From IMG/VR virus record IMGVR_UViG_3300007513_000004, positions 159,403-223,402 of that record: a stretch of DNA of 64,000 bases; one strand, written 5' to 3'. Position numbers and translations under genes: made by a program. The notes under the pieces were generated by a model. That model did no database searches. It was not told the DNA's origin and saw only the letters and a list, made by a program, of their open reading frames with translations. Positions within the stretch are counted from its first letter, which is position 1; every line of letters starts with the position of its first letter. Positions 16,809-58,913 of this stretch are shown piece by piece.

Positions 16809-19800
16809 CTAATTAATTCTAAATTTGTTTCTAGATACAGCCTCAAAAACAATAGTGCCAGGAGATATAGTTTGATTATCTAGCGCTCTAATAAAAGCCT
16901 TCCTTCCTGTTTTATCAGACTCATTAAATAATGAAATATTAACTGAGTCAACACCATTTTCTGCAGCAACAACGGCAATTATATCAGAATAATCAACAAC
17001 CGTTCCAAGTTTTGATGTGTTTAAAAGGTTTGAAACAGAATTTGTAGCATTTTCAACAATTTTTCCAGCCTCTCCAAGAGCGTTATCATTTATCAAAATT
17101 GTTCCTTCAACGTCTATTGTCAATTCCTCTGCCTCTTTAATAAGAATGTCTGCAGTGACAGGCCTAACCCTCTCAATCTCTATAGTAGAGCTTGTTATTA
17201 GCTTATTAACATTATATGATATTGAAATTCTCTCACCTTCTTTTGGAGCCAAAAAATCATAATCAACATAATATGTATTTCCATTTCCAGGCTGACTTAT
17301 CGGATTAACCTCAATGCTTCCCACCAAGTTTCCTGCAATAGATCTAAATCCAGATGATACAGATATCATGTCTATACGGCCAAATTGATTATCGGTAATT
17401 CTATGTCCAGAATCCGTAAAATATAATTCTTCATAAGCTTCGCTATTGTATACCAAAATAACTACCCTTACTACGTCTGAAGAGCTTAGCGAAATAGAGT
17501 TATTATTAGATGTTGACGGCAATGTAACCTCGTAATTTTCCAAATCTGAGTCTACCTGACCTGTGCCAATATCATATGTTATATCGTTTAGATAATATCC
17601 TAGCAAGTCAAACTCTTCATCCATCTCTCCGTCCGAATCCAACGTATATACGTGATCAACCCTTGCTATGCCTACATTGCCGGGTATAGAAGTAAGGCCC
17701 AAAGCTGTTTTTAACTCAGACTCTATATCTAAAGTTAACCCGCTCATAGATACTCCGGCCGCAATATCTATTTCGTACCTATTCATGGTTACCCCAGAAA
17801 TCTTTACCTTTCCTGGTTTTGAAATTCCAGATATTCCAACATCAATTTTTGTTGGGCCAAATCTGGCTATAGAAACTTCATCAGAACTTGTATCATAATT
17901 GAAAAATATAGGCTGATTTGTGCCAGAAGTCTCTGCCTGCCCCAGTCCTGATAATTCGTTTGAAGCTCCGCCACCCGTTATTGGAAGGTTTCCCAGGGTG
18001 GTTTTTGGATAAATAGAGTTTATATCTGCAACATAACTTACATAAATTGAATCACCAGATAAATACAGATCTTCTACTGTATCTAAAACCTCTTCTGTAT
18101 CTAAAATACTATCTGAAGGCAATGTTATTATATTGTTATAAAATGACCCATCGGTTCTGTCTACATCAAACACCTCTACTTTGTTATAGTGTATAATAAT
18201 CTCATCGTCTATCGCTCCTGGAGAATCTGATGGAAGATAAATAATTCTTGCAACAAATGATCCATCTGCCTCCTTTGTATTATAAAGCTCTAGACCATCA
18301 CTTTCTCTTCTTATTGATATTACATTTTCTATAGCGTCCTCTTCAGAGTCGATCTCTATCCCTACAACATCTGTAACCCCTACTGTATCAACTACGCTTA
18401 TAGATCCTGATAATTCTATTTTCTGATAAGCAGAAATAACCTTATTAATATTATATCCAAGCTCTACCTCATAAACCAATTCATCATCTGACTTGGTTAT
18501 GACAGACTCTTCTTCAAAGATGCCCCCCGATGGAGTCCAGTCTATAGAGTCTGATGCAGATGGATCTTGAAACTGCGAAAGACTATCTGATCCACCATAG
18601 TCAACATATTTATCATAAACTTGTCTCCATGTATAATTTACACTTAAAACATCCGCAGGAGTTGGAAGGGATCGTCCAGAAATCTCTATAACGCCCTCAT
18701 TATTTAGCCCGTCTGAGTCTAAATTTTGATCAACTACAGAATATAGCTCTCCAGTTGTTTTGTTTTGAACCTTGCTAACTCTAACGGCAGGGGTGTGCAT
18801 TAATCGTACAAACTCTTTTCCTGCAGAACTAACTTCTGAATTTTCTCCGACCTCATTTATATCCCTATACACTTGTATTATATTATCTATATCTGTAAAG
18901 GAAAGAGGGTCAATACTAAAGGATCCAGCCTTAGTGATTCCTTCTCCTGATACAATCTTTGTATTAGATACAAAGTGAATTTTATCAAACCCAAAAGGAC
19001 TTCCTCCAGTTTCTGGATTTAAATCTTTTTCTAATTCAAAATTTCCATGAGTTATTCCATCACTATCAACGAATGCCTCTACCAGTGTCCCAGAAGAGCT
19101 ACCGACTACCGATATTATAGAGTCAATCGGCTGAGCAGGCAATGTTCCGTTTTTAAAAGCTAAGACCCTCCTCTCTTCAGAGGTTCTCGTTGGATCCTGT
19201 CCTGTTTGGCCAAGTATATGATCATTTCTTTCATCAATAATATTTCCAGAGCCAGATAGGTCTGTAAAAATAAATGATTCAGAAATTGCCTCTACTTTTC
19301 TTCCTAGGATATAGGCATCTACTTTGCCTCCAGTTCCAGAGCTTATGATTCTGTCCGTCCCATCCCCTGTCTCTAGAGTTTCGGTTCCATCTCTCAGCAT
19401 CAATGTATCACCGGGCTCTACTATTAGAGCATCTAAAACCCCATTGACGCCCAAGAGGGAGTTTCTATATCCTGCCGAAGTTCCTACATTTGCTCCGCTA
19501 AAAACTGCTAAGATTCTAGACCTAAAAGAATCATCCGTTTCTCTATTTGTTCCACCAGTCATTGATGTTAGATTTGTAACAGATACGGCAAATGGAAGAT
19601 TGGTTGAAACAATCTGAAGAGACGCAACATTGCCTCCGGTTCCTTGCCTAACCGCTTGTACGGGAACTTCTAAAACATACGAACTATTAAGTCCGGCTAT
19701 TCTTAATCCCTTTTTCATCCTACTGGCATTGGCTGCCAATCTATTCTTATCTGTTGCAGACATTACAAAATTACCGATTGTTCTAAACTTTATTCCGTTT

Positions 19801-20135
19801 CTTGCAGTTACAAGAGTACCGGTTGGTATCGATATGTCTCCAACCAATGTATTTGTACAAAATATAACAATCCCATTAGCTGCCGAGCCGGTGTTTCTTC
19901 CTGCTCCAAAATTTGCAGCAAGCCTTTCCAGGTCTCTTCCGGAAGTTGTTGCCAAAGACTGCTTCTCTGCAACAACACCTACTGCTGAATATAATTTTGC
20001 AATCTGATCTGCTGGCAAGTCTACAAACAAATCTCTAGAAACAGTTCCAGGCTTTGTATCAAGATTTGGCTGAGTAAAGCCTAACCTCTGTATCATCGTA
20101 GACACAATTTCACTAAAAGATCTAAACGTAGCCAT
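16809..20135 (-). CDS. Baseplate J-like wedge protein (P2 gpJ / Mu gp47 / T4 gp6 family) with large internal insertion
   Basis: Canonical motif GGTNRETDDSFRSRIL, preceded by an A.GxxGN.....I segment. Position after gp25-like gene. Confidence 0.9.
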   Translation of the reverse strand: MATFRSFSEIVSTMIQRLGFTQPNLDTKPGTVSRDLFVDLPADQIAKLYSAVGVVAEKQSLATTSGRDLERLAANFGAGRNTGSAANGIVIFCTNTLVGDISIPTGTLVTARNGIKFRTIGNFVMSATDKNRLAANASRMKKGLRIAGLNSSYVLEVPVQAVRQGTGGNVASLQIVSTNLPFAVSVTNLTSMTGGTNRETDDSFRSRILAVFSGANVGTSAGYRNSLLGVNGVLDALIVEPGDTLMLRDGTETLETGDGTDRIISSGTGGKVDAYILGRKVEAISESFIFTDLSGSGNIIDERNDHILGQTGQDPTRTSEERRVLAFKNGTLPAQPIDSIISVVGSSSGTLVEAFVDSDGITHGNFELEKDLNPETGGSPFGFDKIHFVSNTKIVSGEGITKAGSFSIDPLSFTDIDNIIQVYRDINEVGENSEVSSAGKEFVRLMHTPAVRVSKVQNKTTGELYSVVDQNLDSDGLNNEGVIEISGRSLPTPADVLSVNYTWRQVYDKYVDYGGSDSLSQFQDPSASDSIDWTPSGGIFEEESVITKSDDELVYEVELGYNINKVISAYQKIELSGSISVVDTVGVTDVVGIEIDSEEDAIENVISIRRESDGLELYNTKEADGSFVARIIYLPSDSPGAIDDEIIIHYNKVEVFDVDRTDGSFYNNIITLPSDSILDTEEVLDTVEDLYLSGDSIYVSYVADINSIYPKTTLGNLPITGGGASNELSGLGQAETSGTNQPIFFNYDTSSDEVSIARFGPTKIDVGISGISKPGKVKISGVTMNRYEIDIAAGVSMSGLTLDIESELKTALGLTSIPGNVGIARVDHVYTLDSDGEMDEEFDLLGYYLNDITYDIGTGQVDSDLENYEVTLPSTSNNNSISLSSSDVVRVVILVYNSEAYEELYFTDSGHRITDNQFGRIDMISVSSGFRSIAGNLVGSIEVNPISQPGNGNTYYVDYDFLAPKEGERISISYNVNKLITSSTIEIERVRPVTADILIKEAEELTIDVEGTILINDNALGEAGKIVENATNSVSNLLNTSKLGTVVDYSDIIAVVAAENGVDSVNISLFNESDKTGRKAFIRALDNQTISPGTIVFEAVSRNKFRIN

Positions 20136-20143
20136 TATTACCC

Positions 20144-20575
20144 CTAAGCAATCCTTACCGTAATATTATCCCTTACCTCTGTAAGTTCTTGTGTTAATAC
20201 GGAAACAAATATATTATAAAGCCTTGGATCAACATCATCTCTTGCTACCGATATCTTGACTATATCCATAATAAGTTCTCCAGGAGACATATTCTGCCTT
20301 CTGGCCTGAGACCTCTGAAGAGACATAAGGTTTCTAACAGCAGTTCTTGCTGAAGACTCAAGATCTAGAGAAACTAATTTGTTATCTGCATGATGCCCTA
20401 TTCGCAAAGCCCCTATATAACTTCCATATTTTGGATGAAACTTATTATCACCAAGCTCTGTTAATAGTATTTTAATAATATCTTGACGCAGCTTTGCATT
20501 GCCATTTACTGTTTTTACAGAGCCACTAACTCCTATTTTAATATCCCCTCTTTCAAGGGCTAAATCAAAAGACAT
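20144..20575 (-). CDS. gp25/gpW-like baseplate wedge, sheath-initiator protein
   Basis: 143 aa. LRQDIIKILLTELGDNKFHPKYGS matches the gp25-like LxTxxGxxxxxPxYG pattern. Immediately before baseplate J. Confidence 0.85.
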   Translation of the reverse strand: MSFDLALERGDIKIGVSGSVKTVNGNAKLRQDIIKILLTELGDNKFHPKYGSYIGALRIGHHADNKLVSLDLESSARTAVRNLMSLQRSQARRQNMSPGELIMDIVKISVARDDVDPRLYNIFVSVLTQELTEVRDNITVRIA

Positions 20576-20665: not shown

Positions 20666-22744
20666 TCAGCCAGTTTCTACAGGATGAACAAAGGTTGCAA
20701 TCTCAGTCATAACTGCATATCTAAATAATTGATAAGCATCATAGGCCCTGAGGGCTATATCATTTGTAGCCTGAGCTATCGTGTCTCTTCTTTCTAGCTC
20801 ATCAAAAAAGCCGCTTGGAAACTCTTCCTCAAGATCTGCAAACTGCTCCTCTGTCAATAAGCATAATAAAGTTTCTTCTTTTGCTGTGAAAAAGGCAATA
20901 AGAAATGCCAATAAGTCTACAGCCCCGACGCCCTTTGATATACCTATCTTCGTTGCTATTTGAGCCTGAGTTTCGTCCTGAGCTTTTTCTGCTCGTCGCC
21001 TTTCATCTTCATCCTTCTTCTCCAACTGAGTTGTAACCCACCTTCTTGGAACATCCATTACAGATAAAACCGCGCTCATCATATGTGCATTTTTTACACC
21101 ACCACTTCTAGCGACACCCTCCTGCAATTCCAATACTTCAGGAACCTGACTGTCTCCCAAGATCAACAAAAGAGATTCTTCAATCATCTGCATAGTCTCT
21201 AACTGACACCGGCTTCCATGCGCCAATGCATCATCCTCTTTACAATAATCCTTTCTTTCAACAGCTGTTCTTGCATTATCATTTGTAACTTCAGAGCCAG
21301 AAGGTGGCGCATAACCACTTTGGTGTTGCATAGTCTGCAGATCTGTTATCTTGCCTCTGACATCAACTGCAAATCCGTGAAGCGCAGAAAATAACCTCGT
21401 TATCATCAATGATTCTATTAGCCCCATAGAGTTTGCAACATCACTGTAAGAAATTGGGACATCAGATATTCCAACGGTCACCGGAGGAGGTGTGTCTGAT
21501 CCAGAAAGATCTGGAGCATTAACTGTAGTTCCGCTAATAATATCAAGCCTTATTCTTATTACAGCTTCTAAAAGTGTAGATCTTAATTTATGCCTATTAA
21601 CAGTCCTGAGGGTGCTTGGGGCAAATGGAGCAGCCACCATTTTCTTTGGCTCATTAATACACTTCGCTATTCTTCCATCTTGAATGGGGGGGAATAGTAA
21701 ATAAGAAAATTTCCAAAAATTCTTTCCTCCCACGAAGCCCTGAAGAGATGGATCCGGCTCTTCCTTGACTTCTCTATTCCACAAAGAATTTAATAAATCA
21801 GTAGAATATTTATTAACCAACGCCGGCTCCATTAATATCAAGGCTTCCGTTACCAGCCAATACAGGTCGTTCTGGGAACTTCCCAAGGCCCAGGCCGGGG
21901 ACAAGGCTGAATCTGCTACATAATTTGGATCAAAGCCCATCAAGCTATCTTCCAAACTTGCCAACTTATCATCCAATGAACCTTCCGGATCAACGTTCGA
22001 CACGGCCGGGGCGCTGAGGATTATACCCATTATTTTATTTGCCGCAGCTAAAGTTGTTTCATTTGCTGTATCTGCTTCTAACAGTTCTTTCACTATATCG
22101 ACAAGCTCCTGAAGCTCTGGAACATATACAAAGCCTGCCTTTTCTAACCTTGAAAAGGCACTGACAGATGCTGAAAGAAAATCATATATAGCATTTGTTG
22201 GAGCCCCGGGCCGAGAGGTGACGGATAGCTGTCTGGTGTCTAAAATACTCATATAAGAATAACTTCCATCTTGCGTAAGGTTTTCCTGTTCACTAATCAA
22301 GTTTCCCGTTTCACTTACAGCAATCAATGCCTCATCAGCGTTTAAATCTGCCGAAGAAGGCATTCCTAACATTCTGAAAAACGCATTCTCATATGACTCC
22401 ATTACAGCCTCTGCATCCACAACTTCTTCAAGAGTTTTCTCCTCCCCTGTTACAGTTGGAATTTCCTGAGCCAATTCAAATGGTAAATACGAAGACCTCA
22501 TTCCGCTAAGTTCAGCAAAAAGTGAAGAAAAATTTTCCGCTACTTCTCCAAACATTTTCGCATAAGCCTCGCCTTGGCCTCCTGGTGGTACAAAATCATT
22601 GTTTACACCGAACTGATCTGCCAAAGAGGCTAGGGCGGTTCCGAGGGCGGCGCTTAATTCGTTTGTGGTCATACCAGAAGCGTCTACATTTGATTCTGCT
22701 TTTGCTATAAGATCTTGAATACCACCCGAGCTTGCAACTGTCAT
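20666..22744 (-). CDS. Hypothetical virion/baseplate-region protein (692 aa, helical)
   Basis: Long ORF co-oriented in the baseplate operon. No recognised motif. Confidence 0.75.
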   Translation of the reverse strand: MTVASSGGIQDLIAKAESNVDASGMTTNELSAALGTALASLADQFGVNNDFVPPGGQGEAYAKMFGEVAENFSSLFAELSGMRSSYLPFELAQEIPTVTGEEKTLEEVVDAEAVMESYENAFFRMLGMPSSADLNADEALIAVSETGNLISEQENLTQDGSYSYMSILDTRQLSVTSRPGAPTNAIYDFLSASVSAFSRLEKAGFVYVPELQELVDIVKELLEADTANETTLAAANKIMGIILSAPAVSNVDPEGSLDDKLASLEDSLMGFDPNYVADSALSPAWALGSSQNDLYWLVTEALILMEPALVNKYSTDLLNSLWNREVKEEPDPSLQGFVGGKNFWKFSYLLFPPIQDGRIAKCINEPKKMVAAPFAPSTLRTVNRHKLRSTLLEAVIRIRLDIISGTTVNAPDLSGSDTPPPVTVGISDVPISYSDVANSMGLIESLMITRLFSALHGFAVDVRGKITDLQTMQHQSGYAPPSGSEVTNDNARTAVERKDYCKEDDALAHGSRCQLETMQMIEESLLLILGDSQVPEVLELQEGVARSGGVKNAHMMSAVLSVMDVPRRWVTTQLEKKDEDERRRAEKAQDETQAQIATKIGISKGVGAVDLLAFLIAFFTAKEETLLCLLTEEQFADLEEEFPSGFFDELERRDTIAQATNDIALRAYDAYQLFRYAVMTEIATFVHPVETG

Positions 22745-22747
22745 ACT

Positions 22748-25700
22748 TTAATTCTCCAATTTCGTTCCGAAGGTTTGAGGTCCTGGCTTGGCAGACTTGG
22801 CGCTTTCATCTCTATCGTCATCTCCATACTTGCCGGAAGCTCCTCCGCCACCGGAGTCGGACCCGCTCTTAGGTACGAATAAAATAGTAAGTGTTCTATC
22901 TACCTTCATTAATTCACCTGGAGCAAAAAGCAACGAATCTGCTTCTGCATCGCCTGTGCTTTCCGCATCTTCTATGCAATCTACATCGGAAGAGGCCGAA
23001 GCATCCTCAGACTCTCCTCTTGTATCAATTATGCCTGACTCTGTAACAGCCTGTATGATAACCGAACAAACGGTCCCTCTCATAACAACCTTGCCCGGAG
23101 AATCCGCCGTTACAGCCAATGTATATGTTGATTCGTCCTTATCTACCAAATCTTCTTCTCCGGCGATAACCTCGATCCGTCTTGCCGAACCTGTGTCGTC
23201 CGTCAAAAAGTCTATTTTGATGCTATCGCTTAAATCAAGAGCTTGAGATATTTCTTCATCATAACAATCTCTTGGTATAAGTTCAATAAGAACCTTTGAT
23301 TCGGCCTCTGCAACGATCATATCTCCAACTCCAGAAGCATATTCCATAGCTCCCGTAATAGACGGGAAGCCTTCCATTTCATCAAAGTCTAATTCGTCAA
23401 CAATATCGCTCTTAATCAAGGTTGCAAGATCTTTTTGCTCTGGATTTATATATTCCGTAAGCGGTGTTTCATCGTCATCTCCAAGCAGCTTAAACGTTGT
23501 ATTCAATGGGTTAATAACAAACCTGCAAGTATCATCTATAGAATTCTCAACGCATGCCTTAAGAGCGTCATACTTCGTTATAATGAGCGGCATCGGAACG
23601 GGATTGAGGGCCAGCTTAAGCTCCCCTGTATCTTCATCCTCAACGGCTCCGATGGCAAGTTCGTGTCTTAACTTTGGAATAATCCCAAGAGGCACGCCAT
23701 CGTCATCTAACTCTTCGCTCTTAAAGTGCTGAAGGAATTCCTGCAAACAATCTAATGTGGGGGTTATTGCTATGTCTCCCAAGTCTTCTTCGAAGCCTGG
23801 AAGGTCCAAGAGAAGCTCCATCGGCCCCGAGGCACCGCAAGCTGATGCGATATCATCGGCAACCTGTCTAACGTCAACAATGTAAAGCCTTGGGAAGTCA
23901 AACACCTTGATTGAATCAAGAGAATTTCCAAGATCCTTTTGTTCTTTTCTGTGACCGCCGCCAAAATCATATGCCCATCCAAGCTCTGGAAATGGCATTT
24001 TATGTGCATCTTCCCAAGAGACTTCAAGAGTGTCGTCTGCTACAGTCTCCATAACAAGGAAGGAGGAGGCTGTGGAGGTGGCTGCATCTCCGCTATTTGT
24101 CCAACTTATCTCATACCCTTCCACAAAGCCCTCCCCCGCATCTGTATCAGGCTCTCCAGATATCTCAAAGGCTGTCCACGCAGCCTCTAAGGCCGCCCCC
24201 TGTTTTGTCTTTGGCAAATATTCAGTACCAGATGGTGCCAAACCAGACAAGAAGCTTGCATTGGCTTGAGCTTTAATAACAAGCTCTCCATCAACGGGGT
24301 ATTCTGCTACGCCGGAAGCAGTCGCAGCAGCTCCTGGGTCGCCGGATAATATAGTACTTTTTGGATCAATATTTCTATAAACCTCTTGATCTTCCTTTCC
24401 AAATCTTTTCTTTGGAGCACTTGGATGATTAATCATCTTTGCGTTTATTGATTCAATCTCCCCACTCTCAGTCACAATAATTCCACCGCCTGTATCTGTT
24501 TCTTCGACAAAATATACATTAAACTCATCATCAACAAGGGCAATCATTGGAATGTTTCCAAAAGTTTTAGTAACTGTAACTGGATTAAACTCAGCCACCA
24601 TAGTCTCCTCATTAACACTAGCCTCTTGAAGTTCAATCTCTACAGTTAACGGCTTTGGCTGATAGCCGTCTCCAGACTTTGTTAAGAAAATACCCGTCTT
24701 TCCATCTATTGGGCTAATAAAATCAAAATCACTTCCATCCTCTCCCTCGCCGGAGCTACCGCCACAAACATGTAATGAATCATCCGTACTTCTCAAAAAC
24801 ATCGGTGGAGAATCAAGAGTCTGTAACTCGCTTATAGTTTTCTTTCTAAAAAATAATGGGAACAATAAGAAGAATGGCCACCACGAAACTATACTTGTTT
24901 TGCCCCTATCGTTGAATTGAAACTCCACAATTCTTGGATCTGGACCTGTAAATATTGCAAACTTTTTAACGCTTCTTGTAAAAGACAAGCCAAATGTTGC
25001 ATTGAAATCACTGTCATCAAACTTCAAACCTGGATAATCAATATTGGGCATTTCCCCAGAGCCTTCGGAATCTCCTTCAAAGAACCCTCCTTCTATTACG
25101 AGCAAATTATCACCTGTAGCACTGTCTGTAAGGCCAGGCAACTCATTACCCGCATAACCACTGTTGCTAGATACAACAGCCGTACCTAGTTCATCAGATG
25201 AATCTATTAAAATATCACTAGGACATATACCGGCGGGATCATCACACCAGTCATCTCCATCGACATCTCCATCGAGCAGATCCGGCGGCGTATTTCCCCA
25301 AGTTTTCACATTATCTACCGGCAAAGTTGTATAGGTCTGAGCCAATGGCAGTAGCGCATCGGGCTCAATTCTTCCTCTTGGAGCAACCTTGCCAAGTATC
25401 AATCCGGCAAGCTGCGATGGATCAATACAAGCCTCTTCGTCGTCATCCGCACCAATTTGACAAGGGAAGGAGAATACAAGCATCAACAGCTCCAAGAATA
25501 GCTTTAGAATCGTTATAATTGGCTCTAGAACCGATAGGTCAGCCTCAAGGCTGAACAGGTGCTCATTTATGGCCTCCTCCAGCGCTACAATCGCCGGATA
25601 GTTCTTCTGCTCAATTGCGTTTACAAGAGCTGTTATGATTTCGTTTATAGCGTTGATGATGCTTAAGATCTTCAGAATCACGCAGAGCAGCAACTCCAGA

Positions 25701-28700
25701 AGGTGCAGTAATAATGCCAAGAACATAGCAGGAACAGAAAGCTGCGGCAATAACAATATAAGATCAAATAAGCACAAGAATAATCTAATTATTGCAAACA
25801 CCAATCTTATCGGATGCAGTAAAGCACATATAACATCAATAATGCAGAAGATAACCTTGATTGGAATCAAAAGAACTTTAAAGTTTCTAAGCTGAAGCGA
25901 TAACTCTGCAGTCAAGTGGAAGGAGAGATCACAGAAACTTTGCAAAAACTCTTTTGCGATATTTGCCTTATCTAGCGTTACAGATGTAAACTTGAGGAAA
26001 AACATCTCAAGCTCTTCTTGCAGCTTGCCCGCAGGACCCGTCTTGTTTCTGTTTCCACCAAAAATTTGGTCTGGCCATTTATCATCTAGATTTAAAGCAA
26101 TATCATTGCCCATCTGACGCTTGAGCCTCATTCTATTTTCTTGAGAATTTGTAAGAGAAATGCTCATACATTCACTCATTCCAAATACTGCAAAACTGCT
26201 CATATCCGGAATTGTGATTATCCAATTCATATAAATTCCGTCTGTAAACGGAGTTCCTTTTTTGGCCTTTACTCTCTTTCCAGCAACTTCAAATTTAGTA
26301 TCCTTCTTTGTTCCAATTGTTCTTAAGTAAATATTGTCATCAGAATTGACAATCATTGTTGAAAATATTTTTTTACCATATGATTTATATGGAAGCTTTT
26401 CATTCGGATCATTAATCCGAGCTTCTACAATTTCTGGAACATTAAACTTAATTGCAGCAACCTGCTCAAACCTAAAGGATAAAACCAATTTAAACTCATT
26501 CTCAAACTTATCTATTCCCGAAGATTGAATTGCCGCATCTTTATCTATAAAGACTTGATTAATATTTACCTTTGTAAAATCATTTGGCCTTGGCCCCATT
26601 GACGAAGCCCTCTGCTCCACACCTTCTGCTATTTGATTAAGCATTTGGCCAGCACTTGATAATTGATCTGAAAGCGTATTTAAAGCAGCAACCCCTGACG
26701 CTATTGCGTCAAGAACAGATTGGGCTCCGTCCATAACATCATCTACTGCACCTTGCGCAGTATCAAGAGCATTTGTAATGTCATCACCTATTGACGAAGA
26801 GTCAAGCCCTCCAGCCGCATCTGCTGCTGCACGAGCCTCCTCCAGAGCCTGCTCCTCAGCCTCTGCCGCGCTTAAGGCCTCATCTCCCAAAGATTCTTGT
26901 GCCGCTTCTTCTTTTGCAGCATACTCTGCTGCAGCTGTATCATAGTCTAATTGTAGCTCCTCGAAGGCGTCACCAGCTTCATCCATGGTTTCCTTGGCAG
27001 CATCAAGCTGCGCCTTCATCCCCTCCAGGGTTGCTGCAGCCTCTTCCTTTATCCTTTCATACATTGCGGCCATTTCAGATAAGCTTAAGGCAACCGTAGT
27101 TTGGCCATTCGTATCTATCGCAATAATCTCAACACCAGGCTTCCCCTCTTCATTTACTGGCGAATCAGACAAAGACATGCCATATATGTCTCCACCATCT
27201 TCGGCTCCAAAAACCATATCTACACTTGGATATATTTTAATTGGATTAGCAAATTCATAATAAGCATTTTCATTTGTAGATGGTTTGGTCCCAACCTCTT
27301 CGCCGCCCGGTCGCAAGGGATAACTTTCATTGGCAATTAATGGAAGTGGAGTTAAGCCTGCATTGCCTCCTGGGAAAATTATTGAAGACATACTCTCTTC
27401 GCCACTTGAGTCGGTAAACCTGCTAAGAGTTCCGGACAACATTGTTGTTGGTCGATCCTGACCTCTGGCCAAGACCGTTATATCCCCATCGTCCTTTACG
27501 GGGCTGCTGTCTACAACATCATCACTTATTCCACCATACCTTTCGTTAGAAAATGTAACAGTCGTTCTGTTATATAAAGTTGAATCATATGTTACATTGA
27601 AATATCTATCCTTTTTGCTTATGACTACATCTGTCCATCCCTCATCTTTAATGTTTCTTATATTTCTATAATTTGCGACAAGATATGAATTTTCAGCATA
27701 CTTTATCCTTCCGGCTCTCGATGGCTTTAGTCTTTTTGACCCAATATATCCTTTATACATTTTGGACATTCTGGCCTGCTTTGGACCGGTAAAGACTACA
27801 GACAAGCGGTCTAAACCATCTGATGTAATAATTGAAAATGGAGATATTCCAGAGCTATGACCACCTTGCGTTAGTTCGCTTAAATTATTATTTTTTATTT
27901 TTTTATTAAGCGTATTTGAATCACTATTGAGAATATCGAGAGGTATATTAGACTCAATTCTTGGCTTTCCACCTAAGGCTGATGGCAAAGTTGCAACAAA
28001 CCCCAAGATATGTGGCGGAGTAATAAAGGGTCTAAGCTCAGATCCTGGCTTACTATCTTTGGCTCCCAGCGGAATAATCCCATAACTTTGATCAGAACTC
28101 GACAAAGCCTGAGGGCCGCCTGGCTCGTTGAGAGGCTCGTTAGTTATAAGAATATATGCTGGATATTCCTTTTCTGATCCAACCAATTCAGTAAATCTGC
28201 TATAATTTAAAGATGCAGCCGCCGAGCCTGGAAAGTTTAAAATAGCTTTTCTTTTACTTATATATTCAAAGTCTGAAGAACCAATTTCGTATCCAAATTT
28301 CATAGGAACATGAAAACTAGCTCCATTCGGACTTGCAACGGTAGCCATTTCTATCTCCGAAATAGTACCCCCGCTTCCCGTCCAGCCTATATCTTCTTCT
28401 AAAATATCAAGATTTTTACCACCAGTGTCATTCAAAATTGCTATATAAGCATAAAAGGTTCCTCCAAAAATTGGCTTTTTGGATTTAATTTTAATTTCTG
28501 CATTTTGACCATCCATAAGAAGTGGAATGGAATGAACAGCGTTTGTCTCACTTCTAAACTTTGGAACAAAAAATCCATCTCTATCTGGGATTGGCGTAGG
28601 CGTAGGCGTAATGTCTGGCAATTCTATTTTGTCAGTACCTGGTGCTGCTACATAAATTTGAAACCCAGGAGAAGGATCAGTCGCGCCTTCTTCGGTCTGC

Positions 28701-30964
28701 GGCTGGGAGCATGTTCCGCTTGAAAGCTGTAAGCATACATAAAGCGTTCCCACATTAGATCCTAAGATATCAGACACAAGAGCTTCAGAGCGCACAGTTA
28801 AACTAGTTGATGATTGATTTGCAAAAATTACCGAATAATCACCAACGCTATCTCCGTCTTGAAAAGACCCTATTAAATTCTGCATTAATGGATCTGTATA
28901 AAAGTTAACCGAAACTACATCTGTCAAACCCTTCCCTGTAAAGGTTAATGCCTTGGTTCCATAAAAGCTAGCATCTGCGGAGAAAACCAGTTTATCATCA
29001 ACAAAACCATTTGGCTTTATCTTGGTTAATGTGACTGCCTTTGGATATACTTCTATATTATTTCCTGGAACTCTTACAATTTGACCTATATCATCAACCA
29101 CATAAAGAGCATATTCTGTTTTTTCTGACTCAGAATAAATATCCAACCCACTTGCAGCACCACTGGATGACCCGCTTGATGTATAAGGAATCTCAAGAAC
29201 CCATTCATCGTCTGGAGCATCTTCGCTCTTTGTTTTTGTAAGCGGAATCCAAATAGGAGGAATCTGATCTTCAACACTTGTTAAAATATTTGGCCTATTA
29301 GAAGCAACAATATCTCTGGCCCCGATGGTTTTAGATTCGAAAAACTTTTCATCGTTTGTTTCGTCCGCAGGCATTCCATCTCTAAACCCGAGAAGAATAT
29401 CAGGTCTATTTGCCTCACCCAAAACATCCGAAGTTCTATTCGCGCCCACCTTTGCAAGCGGAACGGACAGCGGAAATCCAAGATCTTGAAATCTATATCT
29501 ATTAAATGCATTTATAAAAAAATACTGTTGCTCCAGACTGTCCTTTGCCGACTGAGAATAGGCTGTTAACATCTCTTTATTAAAAGCGGATACATCACCA
29601 CTATTTATATAATCTAAAAGAACTTTATATACTGCCTGAAAATCTTCTTTCGATATATCATCAACAGACACCACAGGGCTTGCAGAAGAATCTAAATACC
29701 CCTTTGTAAGAACCGGCGCTGTAAACATCTCTACAGCCTCCCAAGACTCCCTAAACCCCCTTACTCTGGGTGGCTTTTTCGGAGTTATAATTGGAGATAA
29801 AAAGAACTCATAAGACGCAGAGGCTTTGTCTGAATCTCTATTCGTATCATACAGCCCCTCTCTGCTAATCGCTATATAACCCTTATCTCCATATTCTGGA
29901 TATGTTGTATCACCCGCCATTAACTCACAGGCCGGTGGCGCTTGATATTCAAAAGCTTCTGCAGCATAATTATTTCCATTAAGAAATTCAAAACAAAATG
30001 TTATATACTCTTCCGAAGGCTCTCCTAGGTCGTACATATTTGTTGTGTATCCAGAGCTATCTCTTCCAGATAGGTCTGGCATTTTAATATATACCGAATC
30101 ATCGTTGGCCGTATAATATCCTATATCTGATTTAAACAAATCTCCAAGGATATAATCTTCTTCTATATGAAATATAGGAAATATATCAAGCAATATTTTG
30201 ACGATACTATCATCTTCTATATCAATAACACCATCGGTTTCAGCCCCTACCCCGGTCAGGTACTGTGATAACGTTTCAAATGTCTCGCCGGAAATTCCAA
30301 CGTAATTCTTTAGCCCAAACTCCTCATCTGCAGCATTAACCAAGATATCCAGCATATCTTTTAATACTTGCATCGGAATAAACTTAAATGTTCCAACCGT
30401 TTTTAGTCCAGATAATCTTATATTATCTTCAGCCAAAGGATCTAGCTTCTTCTGCAGGTCCGAAGCATCTTCTATGCTTTCTGAAATCATCCTTGTAAGC
30501 ACAATAGATGGAACGTTACCTTCATGCCAACCATCTGTAATAGACGGCATGCTTTCTAATGATTTATTTATTTTATTTCTAGCAGTTACAAGGCTGGCTA
30601 CTCGCGGAAATTCACTCGAAGTATCAACCCCCGGTGTAATAGCGCTTATATGAGCCTTTAATCTTCCAAGTCTATATTTATTAAGCTTTTTGCTATACGT
30701 AGCTTTTGTTGTGTTTATTTTCTTATCGGACTGTAAAGATATCTTTACAATTGATCCTCCAATTAATGGAATTTTTTCTTTATCTTTTGCAGCATCAGGA
30801 AATAAAATTTCCATATCTTTAATCTTAAGATTAGAACGCCCAGAGGATGCCGTGGACGAATCATTATCCTCTGGATTGCAATTTACGTATATTTTTGAAA
30901 ATTCTTCTTGAAGATTAATATCGCCAACTAATAGCGGAAGAATCTTAGATACATTATCACCCAT
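22748..30964 (-). CDS. Giant hypothetical virion protein (2738 aa) with a coiled-coil and a long hydrophobic helical segment
   Basis: Long ORF between spike and gp25. Ala/Glu heptad region at about 26640-27070. Leu/Ile/Phe/Cys-rich stretch at about 25455-25950. Confidence 0.75.
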   Translation of the reverse strand: MGDNVSKILPLLVGDINLQEEFSKIYVNCNPEDNDSSTASSGRSNLKIKDMEILFPDAAKDKEKIPLIGGSIVKISLQSDKKINTTKATYSKKLNKYRLGRLKAHISAITPGVDTSSEFPRVASLVTARNKINKSLESMPSITDGWHEGNVPSIVLTRMISESIEDASDLQKKLDPLAEDNIRLSGLKTVGTFKFIPMQVLKDMLDILVNAADEEFGLKNYVGISGETFETLSQYLTGVGAETDGVIDIEDDSIVKILLDIFPIFHIEEDYILGDLFKSDIGYYTANDDSVYIKMPDLSGRDSSGYTTNMYDLGEPSEEYITFCFEFLNGNNYAAEAFEYQAPPACELMAGDTTYPEYGDKGYIAISREGLYDTNRDSDKASASYEFFLSPIITPKKPPRVRGFRESWEAVEMFTAPVLTKGYLDSSASPVVSVDDISKEDFQAVYKVLLDYINSGDVSAFNKEMLTAYSQSAKDSLEQQYFFINAFNRYRFQDLGFPLSVPLAKVGANRTSDVLGEANRPDILLGFRDGMPADETNDEKFFESKTIGARDIVASNRPNILTSVEDQIPPIWIPLTKTKSEDAPDDEWVLEIPYTSSGSSSGAASGLDIYSESEKTEYALYVVDDIGQIVRVPGNNIEVYPKAVTLTKIKPNGFVDDKLVFSADASFYGTKALTFTGKGLTDVVSVNFYTDPLMQNLIGSFQDGDSVGDYSVIFANQSSTSLTVRSEALVSDILGSNVGTLYVCLQLSSGTCSQPQTEEGATDPSPGFQIYVAAPGTDKIELPDITPTPTPIPDRDGFFVPKFRSETNAVHSIPLLMDGQNAEIKIKSKKPIFGGTFYAYIAILNDTGGKNLDILEEDIGWTGSGGTISEIEMATVASPNGASFHVPMKFGYEIGSSDFEYISKRKAILNFPGSAAASLNYSRFTELVGSEKEYPAYILITNEPLNEPGGPQALSSSDQSYGIIPLGAKDSKPGSELRPFITPPHILGFVATLPSALGGKPRIESNIPLDILNSDSNTLNKKIKNNNLSELTQGGHSSGISPFSIITSDGLDRLSVVFTGPKQARMSKMYKGYIGSKRLKPSRAGRIKYAENSYLVANYRNIRNIKDEGWTDVVISKKDRYFNVTYDSTLYNRTTVTFSNERYGGISDDVVDSSPVKDDGDITVLARGQDRPTTMLSGTLSRFTDSSGEESMSSIIFPGGNAGLTPLPLIANESYPLRPGGEEVGTKPSTNENAYYEFANPIKIYPSVDMVFGAEDGGDIYGMSLSDSPVNEEGKPGVEIIAIDTNGQTTVALSLSEMAAMYERIKEEAAATLEGMKAQLDAAKETMDEAGDAFEELQLDYDTAAAEYAAKEEAAQESLGDEALSAAEAEEQALEEARAAADAAGGLDSSSIGDDITNALDTAQGAVDDVMDGAQSVLDAIASGVAALNTLSDQLSSAGQMLNQIAEGVEQRASSMGPRPNDFTKVNINQVFIDKDAAIQSSGIDKFENEFKLVLSFRFEQVAAIKFNVPEIVEARINDPNEKLPYKSYGKKIFSTMIVNSDDNIYLRTIGTKKDTKFEVAGKRVKAKKGTPFTDGIYMNWIITIPDMSSFAVFGMSECMSISLTNSQENRMRLKRQMGNDIALNLDDKWPDQIFGGNRNKTGPAGKLQEELEMFFLKFTSVTLDKANIAKEFLQSFCDLSFHLTAELSLQLRNFKVLLIPIKVIFCIIDVICALLHPIRLVFAIIRLFLCLFDLILLLPQLSVPAMFLALLLHLLELLLCVILKILSIINAINEIITALVNAIEQKNYPAIVALEEAINEHLFSLEADLSVLEPIITILKLFLELLMLVFSFPCQIGADDDEEACIDPSQLAGLILGKVAPRGRIEPDALLPLAQTYTTLPVDNVKTWGNTPPDLLDGDVDGDDWCDDPAGICPSDILIDSSDELGTAVVSSNSGYAGNELPGLTDSATGDNLLVIEGGFFEGDSEGSGEMPNIDYPGLKFDDSDFNATFGLSFTRSVKKFAIFTGPDPRIVEFQFNDRGKTSIVSWWPFFLLFPLFFRKKTISELQTLDSPPMFLRSTDDSLHVCGGSSGEGEDGSDFDFISPIDGKTGIFLTKSGDGYQPKPLTVEIELQEASVNEETMVAEFNPVTVTKTFGNIPMIALVDDEFNVYFVEETDTGGGIIVTESGEIESINAKMINHPSAPKKRFGKEDQEVYRNIDPKSTILSGDPGAAATASGVAEYPVDGELVIKAQANASFLSGLAPSGTEYLPKTKQGAALEAAWTAFEISGEPDTDAGEGFVEGYEISWTNSGDAATSTASSFLVMETVADDTLEVSWEDAHKMPFPELGWAYDFGGGHRKEQKDLGNSLDSIKVFDFPRLYIVDVRQVADDIASACGASGPMELLLDLPGFEEDLGDIAITPTLDCLQEFLQHFKSEELDDDGVPLGIIPKLRHELAIGAVEDEDTGELKLALNPVPMPLIITKYDALKACVENSIDDTCRFVINPLNTTFKLLGDDDETPLTEYINPEQKDLATLIKSDIVDELDFDEMEGFPSITGAMEYASGVGDMIVAEAESKVLIELIPRDCYDEEISQALDLSDSIKIDFLTDDTGSARRIEVIAGEEDLVDKDESTYTLAVTADSPGKVVMRGTVCSVIIQAVTESGIIDTRGESEDASASSDVDCIEDAESTGDAEADSLLFAPGELMKVDRTLTILFVPKSGSDSGGGGASGKYGDDDRDESAKSAKPGPQTFGTKLEN

Positions 30965-31064: not shown

Positions 31065-33509
31065 CTATTCACTATCTGCTAAATCTGCCAACAAATCTGT
31101 GATGCACTGAATTTTCTTACCAACCTCTTCAGCCGCATCTAAAGGATTTGTCTTTGGCGAAGCAGCCGGATCATCAGAACATGGAGCTTTGTGCGTTTCT
31201 CTTGGCGGCCTGTTTGCCTGCCTTACCTCTATTCCGTTTCCTGCAAGAATAAGCTTTGCCGTACTCTCTAAGCATAAATTTCCATCATTTCTAATAATCA
31301 TTGGCGCTCCGGGCTTCATCCCAGCTATAACCAAGCCTGCCTCACTTATGGAAATAATATAATCCGAAGCATGATTTCCATCTTCGGCCGCCCATCCTTC
31401 TTGTCCGCAATATCCTTTATCTGTCATATTTACTCTTAATTCAAACCTGCCTTCGCTAAAGTTATCGCCCGTTCTGCCTCCAACATTAAGCAGGAAATCT
31501 CCATCGGTCTGAACGACCACGCTTCGACCCTCTGAATCTGTACCAAACCAAGCAACCAAGGCCCCTGCTGTATCTAAAACGATACTTTTACCGTCTTGAT
31601 TATCGGCCCCGACAGAGGTCTCTATTGATCCTTCGAAATTTAAATTAGCACTTTTTCCTCCAGACTCCTTTCTCGTGCCTTCGCCTTTGTCGGCACTCTC
31701 AGTGGCTAGTTCTTCGCTAATAGAGAATGAATTTGTATATGGAACATTGGTTTCTCCCGCGCCGCCGGAAAAACTTTTGCCAGCAACGAGAACCTCTCCG
31801 CCTGGATCCATAGCGGGTGGACCCGGATTAATCTCCACTGTGGACATAAATGTTACATCATTAGCGTCTGAGCCGTCTGCGTTTGGATCTTTAGACTTTC
31901 TCTCAAAGGACTGTCCAAGAGAATTCCCCAAAACAATACCTGGGCATGCAGTTACCGAGGTCGGAATATGAACACATTTTATTAAATTTCCAATAAGCAT
32001 TTCTGCTGCAGCATACATGTTATGATACTTTGTAGAGTTAACACGCACCTTTGTGCCGCCTGATGAATCAATTATATTTTTTAAATTATGAAAATAACCA
32101 TCTTCATTCGTATGTCTAACCCCGGTTTGTCTTGTATATTTAACATCCTCCTCTGTATCTGCAAACATAGCTTCTCTAGCAGCAGCTGTAGGATATATTT
32201 CCGTACCTTCTTCATTGCGCAGCGTAACAGGAATCTTTTCTGAAACACTCTCTGACGATGGCTTGCTTAAAGTTCCGCCCGAAGTTCTGTAGAATAAGGC
32301 ATCAGTAGGGTATAAAACATTGCCAGTGTTTGATGACTTTGGAACATTTAATTTTAAAATACCCTCTTTATCAATTGCACAAATAAAGTTATCATTATCA
32401 TTTGAGGTTGCTTCAGATAAAGAATTTGTAGATAACTGAAAATGATAACCAATCCCTCTTCTGCTTATTAATCTAGCAGATTCATAATCTTTATCAGAAA
32501 CTTCAGACGGAATTAGACCATTATCATCTCCTGTTTTTACAACTCCATAATTTGGATCTAAAACTTCTCCCCTATGATTTACAACATTACCACCTATAAT
32601 CTCTATCAATTGATGTGGAGCCAAATGTAATGCATTTCTACTTCCAATGGCCTTTATATCACTCTCCCTTTCATATATGCTAGGCACAGAAGATGCTCGA
32701 TTAACGACCTCTTGATCATACCCTATGTACCCTGAATGTTCAGAAAGCTCATTAATAACAAGTCTATATTCTGATATTGGAGGATTTCTCATTAACTCAT
32801 TTGAGGCAATATTAAGAGCCCCACGGCCAGGCCAAATACCTCTAGATTTACCATCCGTATTCTTAGGATACATCAAAACCTGATGTCCACAGGGAACTGC
32901 TGCACTAGCAGAGTTGCTTTGCGGATCAAACCTTATTGCATCACCAGAGACTAAACGACTACCTGTACTGACGGATTGAATTGTATGCCCAACGGTTGAT
33001 ACTTTTGTTTCAGTTCCGCGCAAACTTATATATAATCCACTTTTTTGATCATTTCCTAAATATATATTATTATCTGTACAAGAGCCTTCCAAAAGTAACT
33101 GCCCGCCGCCAAACGCCGCCAACTTCATGTCGTTTGTATTCATGGCCGCTATAGGATAATCCGTAGTAGCTGTCGGAACAAAATCGCCTGGCTCGACCCC
33201 CTGGCGGCCCTTCCAGCCGGGTGCCCGGTCGCTATTCGGCTTTGGGATAACCTTTAAAGCCTGAATAGTGCCTCGACTTCCTGGATGCACTCTAATGCAA
33301 AGAACTCTATCTCCTTTGTTTGGATGCCTAAATAGCCCCGAATCTCTTACTCCACCATAATAAAGAGGCGGAATTACAAAGCTGGTCCCAGTATCTTGAG
33401 AGCCCTTATGAACCGTAAGCTCTCCAGTCTTTTTGTTAACATCCAAAACAACTGCTTCAAATGGCCAAAACGATGTTATCTGTCCGGCAATATCTGAATT
33501 TCCACTCAC
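31065..33509 (-). CDS. Baseplate central spike-like protein (gp5/gpV OB-fold N-terminus)
   Basis: N-terminal AVVLDV...PPLYYGG...GLFRHPNKGDRVLC matches the gp5/gpV OB-fold PxxGxxV pattern. C-terminal beta-strand repeats. Follows the hub gene. GTG start with GGAGAA SD. Confidence 0.7.
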   Translation of the reverse strand: MSGNSDIAGQITSFWPFEAVVLDVNKKTGELTVHKGSQDTGTSFVIPPLYYGGVRDSGLFRHPNKGDRVLCIRVHPGSRGTIQALKVIPKPNSDRAPGWKGRQGVEPGDFVPTATTDYPIAAMNTNDMKLAAFGGGQLLLEGSCTDNNIYLGNDQKSGLYISLRGTETKVSTVGHTIQSVSTGSRLVSGDAIRFDPQSNSASAAVPCGHQVLMYPKNTDGKSRGIWPGRGALNIASNELMRNPPISEYRLVINELSEHSGYIGYDQEVVNRASSVPSIYERESDIKAIGSRNALHLAPHQLIEIIGGNVVNHRGEVLDPNYGVVKTGDDNGLIPSEVSDKDYESARLISRRGIGYHFQLSTNSLSEATSNDNDNFICAIDKEGILKLNVPKSSNTGNVLYPTDALFYRTSGGTLSKPSSESVSEKIPVTLRNEEGTEIYPTAAAREAMFADTEEDVKYTRQTGVRHTNEDGYFHNLKNIIDSSGGTKVRVNSTKYHNMYAAAEMLIGNLIKCVHIPTSVTACPGIVLGNSLGQSFERKSKDPNADGSDANDVTFMSTVEINPGPPAMDPGGEVLVAGKSFSGGAGETNVPYTNSFSISEELATESADKGEGTRKESGGKSANLNFEGSIETSVGADNQDGKSIVLDTAGALVAWFGTDSEGRSVVVQTDGDFLLNVGGRTGDNFSEGRFELRVNMTDKGYCGQEGWAAEDGNHASDYIISISEAGLVIAGMKPGAPMIIRNDGNLCLESTAKLILAGNGIEVRQANRPPRETHKAPCSDDPAASPKTNPLDAAEEVGKKIQCITDLLADLADSE

Positions 33510-41984: not shown

Positions 41985-42437
41985 TTATTTATCCTTTGTT
42001 ATATTAAATAATCTAGACATATCTTTCGGCATCCTCGTACTCCTAGCGTCTCTAGGCTTGTCTCCAGTATTACCTTGTAAATTAGTATTTTTATACTTAC
42101 CCCGAATAGACTTAACCAATTCATCATTCTTTCTAAATTCTTCTTGAAGTATTTGTCTTTCGAATTCTTCATCTGAAGCAAATCTGTCATCATCCTTAGA
42201 ATCTCTAATATTTCTAATTTTTTGCACAGCTTCAGAATTCCAGAACGAAGCCAAATATTCAGCAAGATCTAGATTATATTCATATTTGTTTTTTTCATCT
42301 TCTTGCAACATTTGGGCGTACCAAAGCCATTGAGCTTCGCTGATATTCTCGAAACGCTCATCGTCAGAAGTGCAACTCCATGTCTTGCATAGAGCCCAGC
42401 GGAGCCTGCTGATTGGCTCCTCGGTTATACTTTTAAA
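41985..42437 (-). CDS. Frameshift (gpT-like) extension of the tail assembly chaperone; predicted 312-aa fusion
   Basis: The frame of the track's 41985..42311 ORF is open back to the slippery site (SITEEPISRLRWALCKTWSCTSDDERFENISEAQWLWYAQ-MLQE...) and is closed by TAG TGA just upstream. There is no start codon in this extension and no SD before ATG 42311. Confidence 0.75.
   Translation of the reverse strand, partial: FKSITEEPISRLRWALCKTWSCTSDDERFENISEAQWLWYAQMLQEDEKNKYEYNLDLAEYLASFWNSEAVQKIRNIRDSKDDDRFASDEEFERQILQEEFRKNDELVKSIRGKYKNTNLQGNTGDKPRDARSTRMPKDMSRLFNITKDK
42401..42437 (-). promoter_or_regulatory. Programmed -1 ribosomal frameshift element: slippery T TTA AAA plus downstream hairpin
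   Basis: X XXY YYZ heptamer in the correct phase at 42437-42431. A 10-nt spacer is followed by the GGAGCC-8nt-GGCTCC stem (42420-42401). Confidence 0.8.
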
Positions 42438-42922
42438 TCTTCTAAACCAATCTCTTCACTAGAGGCTGCTACAAGCTTTTCGTATATTTGATATACTCTT
42501 TCAACAACAACTGACTGCATGTTAAGAACAACATCCAACCTTCTCTCTGCAACGCCCTCTAACTCTTCATTTGCACAAAGATCTTCTAAAGGAACTCCAT
42601 TTACCGACTCAATAACATAAGAAACAGTAACAGGCTTTATGTCTAGCAATCTATCTATCTGATCAAATTGCATCACTGTTTGCATAATTTCCTTTTGCTG
42701 CTTTGTAGATAATGTGGTTATAACAAATTTATATCCAACTATATCCACAACCTCATTTATCTTTCCTAAAAAAATTAAATTTTTCAAATCATCTAGACCG
42801 AGCATTGTTTCATTTGTTTCTTCTTTACGATTGTCGTCTACAACGGGCTCGATCTCTTCTAAGCTATCTTCTTCATTACTTGTATCATTAGAACGACTAA
42901 TCGTGGCGGTTCTCTTTGGCAT
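42425..42922 (-). CDS. Tail assembly chaperone (gpG-like)
   Basis: 165 aa, acidic, between tube and tape measure. Ends in a slippery site. AGGAGA SD. Confidence 0.8.
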   Translation of the reverse strand: MPKRTATISRSNDTSNEEDSLEEIEPVVDDNRKEETNETMLGLDDLKNLIFLGKINEVVDIVGYKFVITTLSTKQQKEIMQTVMQFDQIDRLLDIKPVTVSYVIESVNGVPLEDLCANEELEGVAERRLDVVLNMQSVVVERVYQIYEKLVAASSEEIGLEDLKV

Positions 42923-58704: not shown

Positions 58705-58913
58705 AAATCTAACTCCATATTTCCGATATGATCTTTAACGTCTACCTTATCTGGAGACATTAAAGACTCCATCTCTTTTATATCAATTAAAAGATATTCC
58801 CTTCCTGTTGATATATTTTCTTTTATTTTTTCCGCAAGGGATATTAAGCCCTCATAAACTTTGCTATTTTTATCTTTTGAAATATCAATAAGCTTGTTAA
58901 TCTTTTCTAACAT
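58701..58913 (-). CDS. Small hypothetical protein (70 aa)
   Basis: Stop/start overlaps on both sides. Confidence 0.55.
   Translation of the reverse strand: MLEKINKLIDISKDKNSKVYEGLISLAEKIKENISTGREYLLIDIKEMESLMSPDKVDVKDHIGNMELDL

Follow-up and report, generated by a model that had tools for sequence, protein, structure and literature searches.

Even for T4, it is not yet fully understood how contractile-tailed phages move their DNA through the inner membrane. This step is relevant to a 64,000 nucleotide (nt) stretch of viral DNA, here called the window (positions 159,403 to 223,402 of the IMG/VR record IMGVR_UViG_3300007513_000004), in which the product of the gene P0001, 2738 amino acids (aa) in length, lies next to a spike-like protein and contains an extremely hydrophobic helical domain. 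A first-pass annotation of the letters alone had proposed a candidate membrane-penetration or ejection device. According to the best reading of the present analysis, P0001 belongs to the structural proteins of the central baseplate, and the uncultured marine myophages that encode it form a widespread clade, which includes jumbo genomes. On a plausible but still tentative view, its hydrophobic domain is a baseplate-stored, shielded candidate membrane-insertion module, which would do the job of the membrane segment in the T4 tape measure. The window is the final 64 kb of the 223-kb viral record, which is 67% complete (CheckV), and every large open reading frame (ORF) of the window lies on the minus strand.

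The gene and its parts, with positions in the window, are the following:

22748..30964, minus strand: P0001, the target gene, 2738 aa, a giant acidic baseplate-block protein; open ORF with translation and 69 collinear homologues of 1500-3030 aa.
27095..30964, minus strand: variable N-terminal extension, aa 1-1290; 15-40% identity among homologues, missing in short family members.
26615..27082, minus strand: Ala/Glu-rich heptad-like helical stretch, aa ~1295-1450, identified by heptad score; a lineage-specific accessory.
26150..26440, minus strand: immunoglobulin-like (Ig-like; IPT/TIG-type) beta domain, aa ~1509-1605; predicted by AlphaFold2 (AF2) with a predicted local distance difference test score (pLDDT) of 85-92, Foldseek and Atlas matches only to TIG/Ig domains.
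25295..26032, minus strand: conserved family-defining region, profile A2, aa 1645-1890; mean column identity of 59% in alignment A2.
25460..25936, minus strand: hydrophobic helical domain, aa 1677-1835, ~160 aa; hydropathy, conservation and AF2 helices with pLDDT 80-92.
25427..25462, minus strand: 'FPC - acidic - C' motif closing the hydrophobic domain, aa 1835-1846; the short forms carry C..CC....C at the same place.
24353..25180, minus strand: beta-rich domain(s), aa ~1929-2204; AF2 pLDDT about 90.
23516..23872, minus strand: C-terminal amphipathic helices, aa ~2365-2483, with the invariant C2376, C2406, C2471 and C2480; AF2 and Cys conservation.
23054..23323, minus strand: Ig-like domain of the filamin/invasin type at the C-terminal end, aa ~2548-2637; Foldseek probability 0.99-1.0 and VIA Z 10-11 to invasin, FdeC and filamin.

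The description of P0001 as an acidic protein without signal peptide was confirmed, with a net charge of about -205 and no hydrophobic signal-like region at the N-terminus. The hydrophobic helical domain of about 160 aa was placed at aa 1677-1835, and the segment quoted in the first-pass annotation corresponds to aa 1695-1835 (nt 25882-25460). The Kyte-Doolittle mean over 19 residues (KD19) peaks at 2.78 in this domain and exceeds 1.6 in 79 windows, and the Kyte-Doolittle (KD) values of aa 1701-1800 average 1.62. For comparison, KD19 peaks at 2.20 in the accepted membrane segment of T4 gp29 and at 1.48 in P0071, the tape-measure-like protein of the window. None of the other tail module proteins comes near the hydropathy of P0001, the sole other signal being a single helix in its neighbor P0072. 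Four membrane-like segments could be delimited (aa 1696-1715, 1718-1737, 1740-1770 and 1810-1834), the third and fourth of which are connected by a polar helical hairpin tip at aa 1771-1809. In the first two helices conserved charges are found exactly at i, i+7 and i+14 (K1696/K1703/D1710 and R1720/R1727/D1734), so that each helix is hydrophobic save for one narrow polar stripe. H1754 and K1765 are conserved as well.

A word-seeded search retrieved 69 homologues with lengths of 1500-3030 aa, each of them from a marine metagenome and annotated as hypothetical. All 69 are collinear with P0001 across its full length and carry the hydrophobic block at the matching position. The identity to P0001 is 64-82% for aa 1651-1850, 15-40% for most of the protein and 11-12%, with many gaps, for the coiled-coil region. 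Invariant in these sequences are C1678, C1707, C1713, C1731, C1761, C1835, D1679, D1710, R1727, H1754, E1796 and the prolines at the helix ends; position 1734 is a D in 68 of the 69 sequences and an E in one. C2376, C2406, C2471, C2480, C2633 and C2663 were also found to be invariant or nearly so. Counting C1846, this applies to 13 of the 17 Cys in the C-terminal 1094 aa (aa 1645-2738), and the earlier wording 'Cys-studded' is thereby even an understatement.

For the more distant relative L005, whose P0001 counterpart is 32% identical overall, the hydrophobic domain shows 67% identity, compared to 57% for gp25, 53% for J, 46% for the 1777-aa protein and 37% for the spike. Judged by these identities, the domain is the best-conserved segment of the baseplate module. 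Where residues are identical, their codons agree in 33% of cases within the hydrophobic domain and in 34-52% across the rest of the gene, i.e. synonymous sites are saturated. The conservation of the domain is therefore attributed to purifying selection on the protein and neither to recent exchange nor to a nucleotide-level signal. These comparisons support the domain as a strongly selected functional element.

Next to the close homologues, a profile of aa 1645-1890 identified 241 proteins of 620 to 3030 aa among 1.84 billion cluster representatives. The extremely hydrophobic segment thus recurs in 69 of 69 close homologues and in the 241 representatives, which is beyond chance. The 241 proteins fall into four size classes of about 620-850, 1500-1600, 2000-2160 and 2400-3030 aa. 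In the short class the hydrophobic domain begins near residue 50-90 and is followed by a Cys-rich acidic motif and a beta/Ig-like C-terminal part. Around the gene of the short form P0133 the gene order is that of the window, with a homologous spike and a homologous downstream neighbor. When P0133 is compared with P0001, only the hydrophobic domain aligns (33% identity, E 9e-12). The motif common to the giant and short forms consists of I1705, C1707, I1708, V1711, C1713, P1718, A1724, L1728, F1729, C1731, P1740 and C1835. Going by these alignments, the hydrophobic domain defines the family, and the large N-terminal part including the coiled coil is a variable, lineage-specific addition. An ancestral core is proposed, which would comprise the ~160-aa helical domain with two helical hairpins, the C-terminal amphipathic helices and the Ig-like end domain.

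The first-pass annotation had regarded P0001 as the strongest candidate for an undescribed component, and the searches in Pfam, PHROG, NCBIfam and PDB agree with this, as no described family was found. Searches of Pfam, PHROGs and NCBIfam with P0001, its neighbors and 12 homologues resulted, for the P0001 family, only in coiled-coil noise and one TIG domain in a single homologue (P0063, in the region equivalent to the N-terminal extension of P0001). No relative was found in the PDB by sequence, neither with the single protein nor with the profiles A2 and A3; a match at E 0.33 to the membrane helices of an efflux pump is compositional. Searches of the giant and short forms against 50,697 phage records using tblastn/megablast gave no match. 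Within the reach of these sequence searches, the hydrophobic domain is a new domain family without a Pfam, PHROG, NCBIfam or PDB relative.

For the structure prediction with AF2 two overlapping regions were used. For aa 1470-2000 (44 sequences), the Ig-like domain at aa ~1509-1605 was predicted with a pLDDT of 85-92 and the helices at aa 1677-1830 with a pLDDT of about 80-90. For aa 1645-2738 (69 sequences), the mean pLDDT was 77 and the predicted template modelling score (pTM) 0.63. The latter model shows long helices at aa 1677-1715, 1718-1731, 1738-1785 and 1789-1829, a beta-rich part at aa ~1929-2204, helices at aa ~2365-2483 and an Ig-like domain at aa ~2548-2637. A lower confidence (pLDDT 53-63) applies in this model to the first two hydrophobic helices, which also differ between the two models. 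In the wide VIA search, 165-178 residues between the model positions ~96 and 840 were aligned to four-helix bundles at Z 11-13. Because the alignment spans these positions, the model is taken to pack the long hydrophobic hairpin against the C-terminal helices (aa ~2365-2483).

The stated noise level of the VIA tool for helical proteins is a Z below about 13, and the helical structure matches of P0001 are generic (Z <= 13.1, with de novo designed bundles on top). The designed bundles, PaxB, Cry6Aa and the chains of T7 entries are thus shape analogies only. In the structure searches with the two AF2 models (Foldseek on PDB, AFDB clusters, BFVD and Atlas; VIA-align wide), only the Ig-like domains gave convincing matches, and no helical match rose above noise. 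For the beta-rich region (aa ~1929-2204) no significant structural neighbor was found in PDB, AFDB clusters or BFVD. This region may represent an undescribed fold, or a neighbor may have been missed owing to the multi-domain query.

The Ala/Glu-rich heptad region described in the first pass is present. It begins at aa 1298 (nt 27073), and a crude score of the a/d-heptad pattern gives 0.7-0.95 for aa ~1295-1380 and ~1400-1450, while the protein as a whole averages 0.37 and has its 95th percentile at 0.65; a Gly/Ser break lies near aa 1385. Its database matches (kinesin stalk, SMC) are compositional only. The idea of a coiled-coil stalk that carries the helical bundle could not be upheld, as the Ig-like domain at aa ~1509-1605 intervenes between the two. 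In addition, the coiled coil is the least conserved part of P0001, is kept in position only in the 2500-3000-aa forms and is missing in the family members of ~2100 aa and ~700 aa. Being limited to certain lineages, it is considered an accessory and not the stalk of a device.

The genetic context was analyzed in the window and in related IMG/VR loci. The tail and baseplate genes with an assignment are the following:

43686-46928, minus strand: tail sheath; phrog_985, phrog_2839 and phrog_279 (tube and sheath together), tblastn matches to actinophage sheaths.
43038-43673, minus strand: tail tube; phrog_985, phrog_2839 and phrog_279 (tube and sheath together).
42425..42922, minus strand: tail assembly chaperone-like protein; phrog_2792, weak, E 0.004.
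39906..41978, minus strand: tape-measure-like protein P0071, 690 aa, Ala/Gly-rich; position after the chaperone and a small ORF, composition, KD19 maximum 1.48.
31065..33509, minus strand: central spike P0073 (gpV / gp5-OB / Mu gp45-like), 814 aa, immediately upstream of P0001; Atlas features and predicted structure.
20666..22744, minus strand: downstream partner P0072, 692 aa, helical, with a single hydrophobic helix near aa 600; gene order in related loci.
20144..20575, minus strand: gp25-like sheath initiator; PF10934, phrog_2669.
16809..20135, minus strand: gp6 / Baseplate_J wedge protein; PF04865 E 1e-21, phrog_6 E 8e-44.

The tail genes on the minus strand are arranged in the order sheath, tube, chaperone-like gene, 108-aa ORF, P0071 and a 341-aa gene with a weak match to tube initiators. 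They are followed by the baseplate block, which consists of a 1777-aa gene, P0073, P0001, P0072, the gp25-like gene, gp6/Baseplate_J and two ORFs of 3319 and 1533 aa. The order 1777-like, spike, P0001-like, 692-like, gp25 and J was found in 47 of 47 related loci, of which one (L057) is without a recognizable 692-like gene and gp25. P0001 therefore belongs to the baseplate block, as expected of a generic structural protein of a contractile-tail baseplate, in all 47 loci. Across these loci the P0001-like protein ranges from 710 to 2763 aa while the lengths of the neighbors hardly change. In two loci the gene is split, into two ORFs in L029 (883+1478 aa) and three in L053 (733+495+1056 aa); natural splits, frameshifts or assembly errors are possible.

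The position beside the spike, as claimed in the first pass, holds for every locus examined, and P0073 is spike-like both by language-model features and by predicted structure. Its Atlas feature neighbors are the Phage_base_V and Gp5_OB clusters (0.92-0.94, at least 170 features in common), and its predicted structure matches the gpV and Mu gp45 clusters with a template modelling score by hit of 0.60-0.65. The central-spike call for P0073 rests on this Atlas search; direct Pfam searches with hidden Markov models (HMM) gave no match for P0073. The HMMs of spike, hub and PAAR proteins (PF04717, PF05954 and PF05488), searched directly in the genome, were all negative. For the 1777-aa neighbor, the homologue search returned unannotated proteins only, and a hub role is presumed. 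The spike of the short-form locus is homologous to P0073.

On the downstream side, a P0072-like gene follows the P0001-like gene in all but one (L057) of the 47 loci, wherever the contig extends beyond it. P0072 may act as a partner of the hydrophobic domain or shield it. The hydrophobic helix near its C-terminus is kept in the L008 orthologue (L008:11979-13652), with a KD19 of 1.84 in the window and 2.77 in the short-form lineage. In the tail genes, HMM searches gave no tape-measure support for P0071, whose length is near-constant among relatives (667-690 aa). The 108-aa ORF (41985-42311, minus strand) lies between the chaperone-like and the tape-measure-like gene, an arrangement that recalls the G/GT chaperone pair preceding tape measures.

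With this context, the claim of a membrane-penetration or ejection device can be maintained in part. The central baseplate-block position and the strongly selected domain speak for it, whereas the stalk and the alternative of an injected effector are not sustained. The absence of a membrane-like segment from P0071, together with P0001 as the one strongly hydrophobic protein of the module, favors a membrane-insertion module. In the virion, the hydrophobic hairpins would be kept soluble in a helical bundle with the C-terminal helices, and disulfides or a metal site formed by the invariant cysteines would hold this bundle closed. The always-adjacent P0072 perhaps helps to shield the hairpins. Upon sheath contraction and loss of the spike the bundle would open, and the two hairpins would insert into the host cytoplasmic membrane from outside. 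Since the number of segments is even, both hairpins could enter from one side and the large flanking domains need not cross the membrane. The conserved heptad-spaced charged stripes could line or gate a DNA conduit, or anchor the tube to the membrane. Possible, though rather doubtful in this specific form, is a previously unrecognized class of phage membrane penetration, namely a Cys- or metal-latched inside-out bundle beside the spike, in which firing unlatches the two hairpins to form a DNA conduit through the cytoplasmic membrane. The trigger of such a device would be reduction, metal loss or mechanical release.

Several observations weigh against a membrane-insertion module. The permanently buried core, already raised as the counter-case in the first-pass annotation, fits the AF2 packing as well as a shielded, releasable element does. 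The very high sequence identity is atypical of simple membrane anchors and could be explained by tight protein-protein packing, and each of the membrane-like segments carries three charged residues. In Bacillus phage G, which is closest among cultured relatives by baseplate J, the whole tail module is devoid of strongly hydrophobic segments, and a device of this kind is therefore not a requirement in this tail lineage. The tape-measure identity of P0071 is based on position and composition only. A homotrimer prediction of the hydrophobic domain (pLDDT 38) was uninformative either way.

The main rival is a static structural core, in which the helices form a permanently buried oligomerization or packing element of the baseplate hub, stabilized by disulfides or metal and without membrane activity. 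It could be, for instance, a 3- or 6-fold helical collar round the spike or tube end, with the N-terminal part as a displayed, adhesin-like decoration. This explanation is possible, if on the unlikely side. It agrees with the burial of the long hairpin with the C-terminal helices by AF2 (pTM 0.63), with the Ig-like domains on both flanks and with the three conserved charges per hydrophobic helix, which are unusual for lipid-exposed helices. The extreme residue-level conservation and the 13 conserved Cys suit tight specific packing, and extensive disulfide networks are known in phage tails, as an account of phage Milano indicates (PMC10811340). However, only about 1 in 7 positions is polar in helices of 20-30 residues, and the mean KD of 1.6 over 100 aa is far above that of usual soluble cores. 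Moreover, the first two hydrophobic helices (pLDDT 53-63) change between the models, and a known baseplate component with such a domain could not be identified in PHROG, Pfam or PDB. Membrane insertion during assembly is improbable. In this case the four segments would insert co-translationally into the inner membrane of the infected cell and hold the nascent baseplate or hub, or P0001 would be a non-virion membrane protein. The even count of four segments would keep both large flanks cytoplasmic and P0072 adds one hydrophobic helix, but the N-terminus is without signal or anchor, and in the giant forms the first segment comes only after 1690 aa. The gene also lies within a rigid structural operon between spike and gp25, its residue-level conservation is far above the need of an anchor, and the flanking Ig-like domains suggest an extracellular, virion-exposed setting.

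The notion of a spike-loaded effector or toxin, injected like the effectors of type VI secretion systems (T6SS) with N-terminal membrane domains, was found to be very improbable. The gene adjoins the spike gene, the helices are membrane-like and the neighboring gene could encode a chaperone; the shielding of T6SS effector membrane domains by Eag chaperones is documented (PMC7773334). On the other hand, PAAR/prePAAR was not found (no PF05488 match in the entire 223-kb record at E <= 10), scans of family members revealed neither a toxin nor an enzyme domain, and P0001 is a universal, slowly evolving baseplate core gene and not variable cargo. Pfam scans of P0072 and its orthologue for an Eag (DUF1795) chaperone were empty. 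Least probable of all, and hardly credible, is that P0001 is the tail tape measure protein with its usual membrane segment. The protein is large, partly helical and has a hydrophobic segment as found in many tape measures, and a short family member weakly matches phrog_4200 'tape measure' (E 1.6e-4). This PHROG is unspecific, however, with matches in 8 of 14 control genomes; its match in the genome of the window lies elsewhere and not in P0001. It is P0071 that occupies the position after the chaperone pair, P0001 being encoded four genes further on. Its length varies about four-fold (710-2763 aa) among syntenic relatives, whereas the P0071-like proteins (667-690 aa) and the neighbors are stable, and AF2 shows beta and Ig-like domains. 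P0001 was rejected as tape measure on the basis of its position, variable length, beta domains and the lack of a tape-measure match in Pfam, PHROG or NCBIfam.

The storage of hydrophobic helices at the tail tip is an already known idea, which is found here in a new domain family. In T4, an amphipathic helical-bundle domain accommodates the membrane segment of the gp29 tape measure (aa 207-246) in a hydrophobic patch, and this segment is implicated in an inner-membrane pore, proposed to form after loss of hub and spike (preprint 10.64898/2026.03.06.709160). The same work describes predicted membrane segments as common among tape measures. The hydrophobic hairpin of P0001 likewise packs on amphipathic helices in the AF2 model. 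In contrast to gp29, P0001 is not a tape measure but a separate gene of the baseplate block, shows no sequence similarity to gp29, and has four segments instead of one with a much higher hydropathy (KD19 2.78 compared to 2.20). Furthermore, its bundle contains conserved cysteines, which are proposed to act as staples, and is flanked by Ig-like domains.

The prePAAR effectors of T6SS are similar in having membrane-like helices on or near the spike of a contractile machine, shielding before firing and an adjacent gene, and are thought to insert their helices into the inner membrane of the target (PMC7773334, PMC12881460). P0001 differs from them as it is a conserved phage structural core gene without PAAR/prePAAR, a DUF1795-like chaperone match or a toxin domain.

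The 'inside-out' alpha pore-formers (colicin pore domain, ClyA/XaxB/PaxB, Cry6Aa) conceal a hairpin of hydrophobic helices within a soluble bundle. The VIA neighbors of the P0001 model include PaxB (Z 9.2) and Cry6Aa (Z 8.6), below the helical noise level of ~13 and with lower scores than designed bundles. In P0001 about 100 of 160 residues are hydrophobic, compared to a single hairpin in the pore-formers, and there is no Pfam match. For the colicin pore domain (PF01024 / ten-helix fold) the Pfam scan was empty and no colicin was among the top Foldseek/VIA matches; for the shell and channel domains of the Tc toxin TcA, neither a Pfam match nor a Tc chain in the structural lists was found.

The podophage ejection proteins (T7 gp14/gp15/gp16 class) are also stored in the virion and refold into a conduit across the envelope. 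Chains of two T7 entries are on top of the first structural list with Z 9.6 and 9.2, amid 50 unrelated matches of Z 8-9.6, which corresponds to a generic helical hairpin. The T7 proteins are stored in the head, whereas P0001 is encoded in the baseplate block, and P0001 has no PHROG match.

The P0001 family provides a compact, very strongly conserved candidate element for the passage of DNA across the inner membrane, with short forms of ~700 aa that would be easy to express. If the module is membrane-active, the pore-forming function would be separable from the tape measure, and the invariant cysteines would form the basis of a new latch chemistry. If the Cys- or metal-latched device holds true, the pore role would be taken over from the tape measure by a dedicated protein of the baseplate, in a clade of marine myophages that is globally distributed and includes jumbo phages. 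If the domain is a buried core only, it would still be the slowest-evolving part of this baseplate, a sharp clade marker and a new domain family.

The clade is without a cultured member. At least 20 metagenome runs of marine or seawater origin, belonging to at least 12 studies (2014-2025), contain near-identical DNA (window 24000-28000). In this general run search, which was not dedicated to RNA, no RNA run was shown to hold this region. Homologues of P0001 (P0007; CMI47_03190) and of its 1777-aa neighbor (P0209; CMI47_03180) are labelled 'Candidatus Pacearchaeota archaeon' at NCBI, which is almost certainly due to a phage contig mis-binned into an archaeal metagenome-assembled genome.

Two further ORFs of the window were noted. 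The 3319-aa ORF after Baseplate_J (6841-16800, minus strand) probably encodes a gp7-like or fibre protein. The length of its orthologues varies from >2280 to 3724 aa, and those in L005 and L008 match YHYH and, weakly, Laminin_G_3. A 151-aa ORF (58913-59368, minus strand) contains a strongly hydrophobic segment with a KD19 of 2.50 near aa 56 and is the only other membrane-like ORF of the window.

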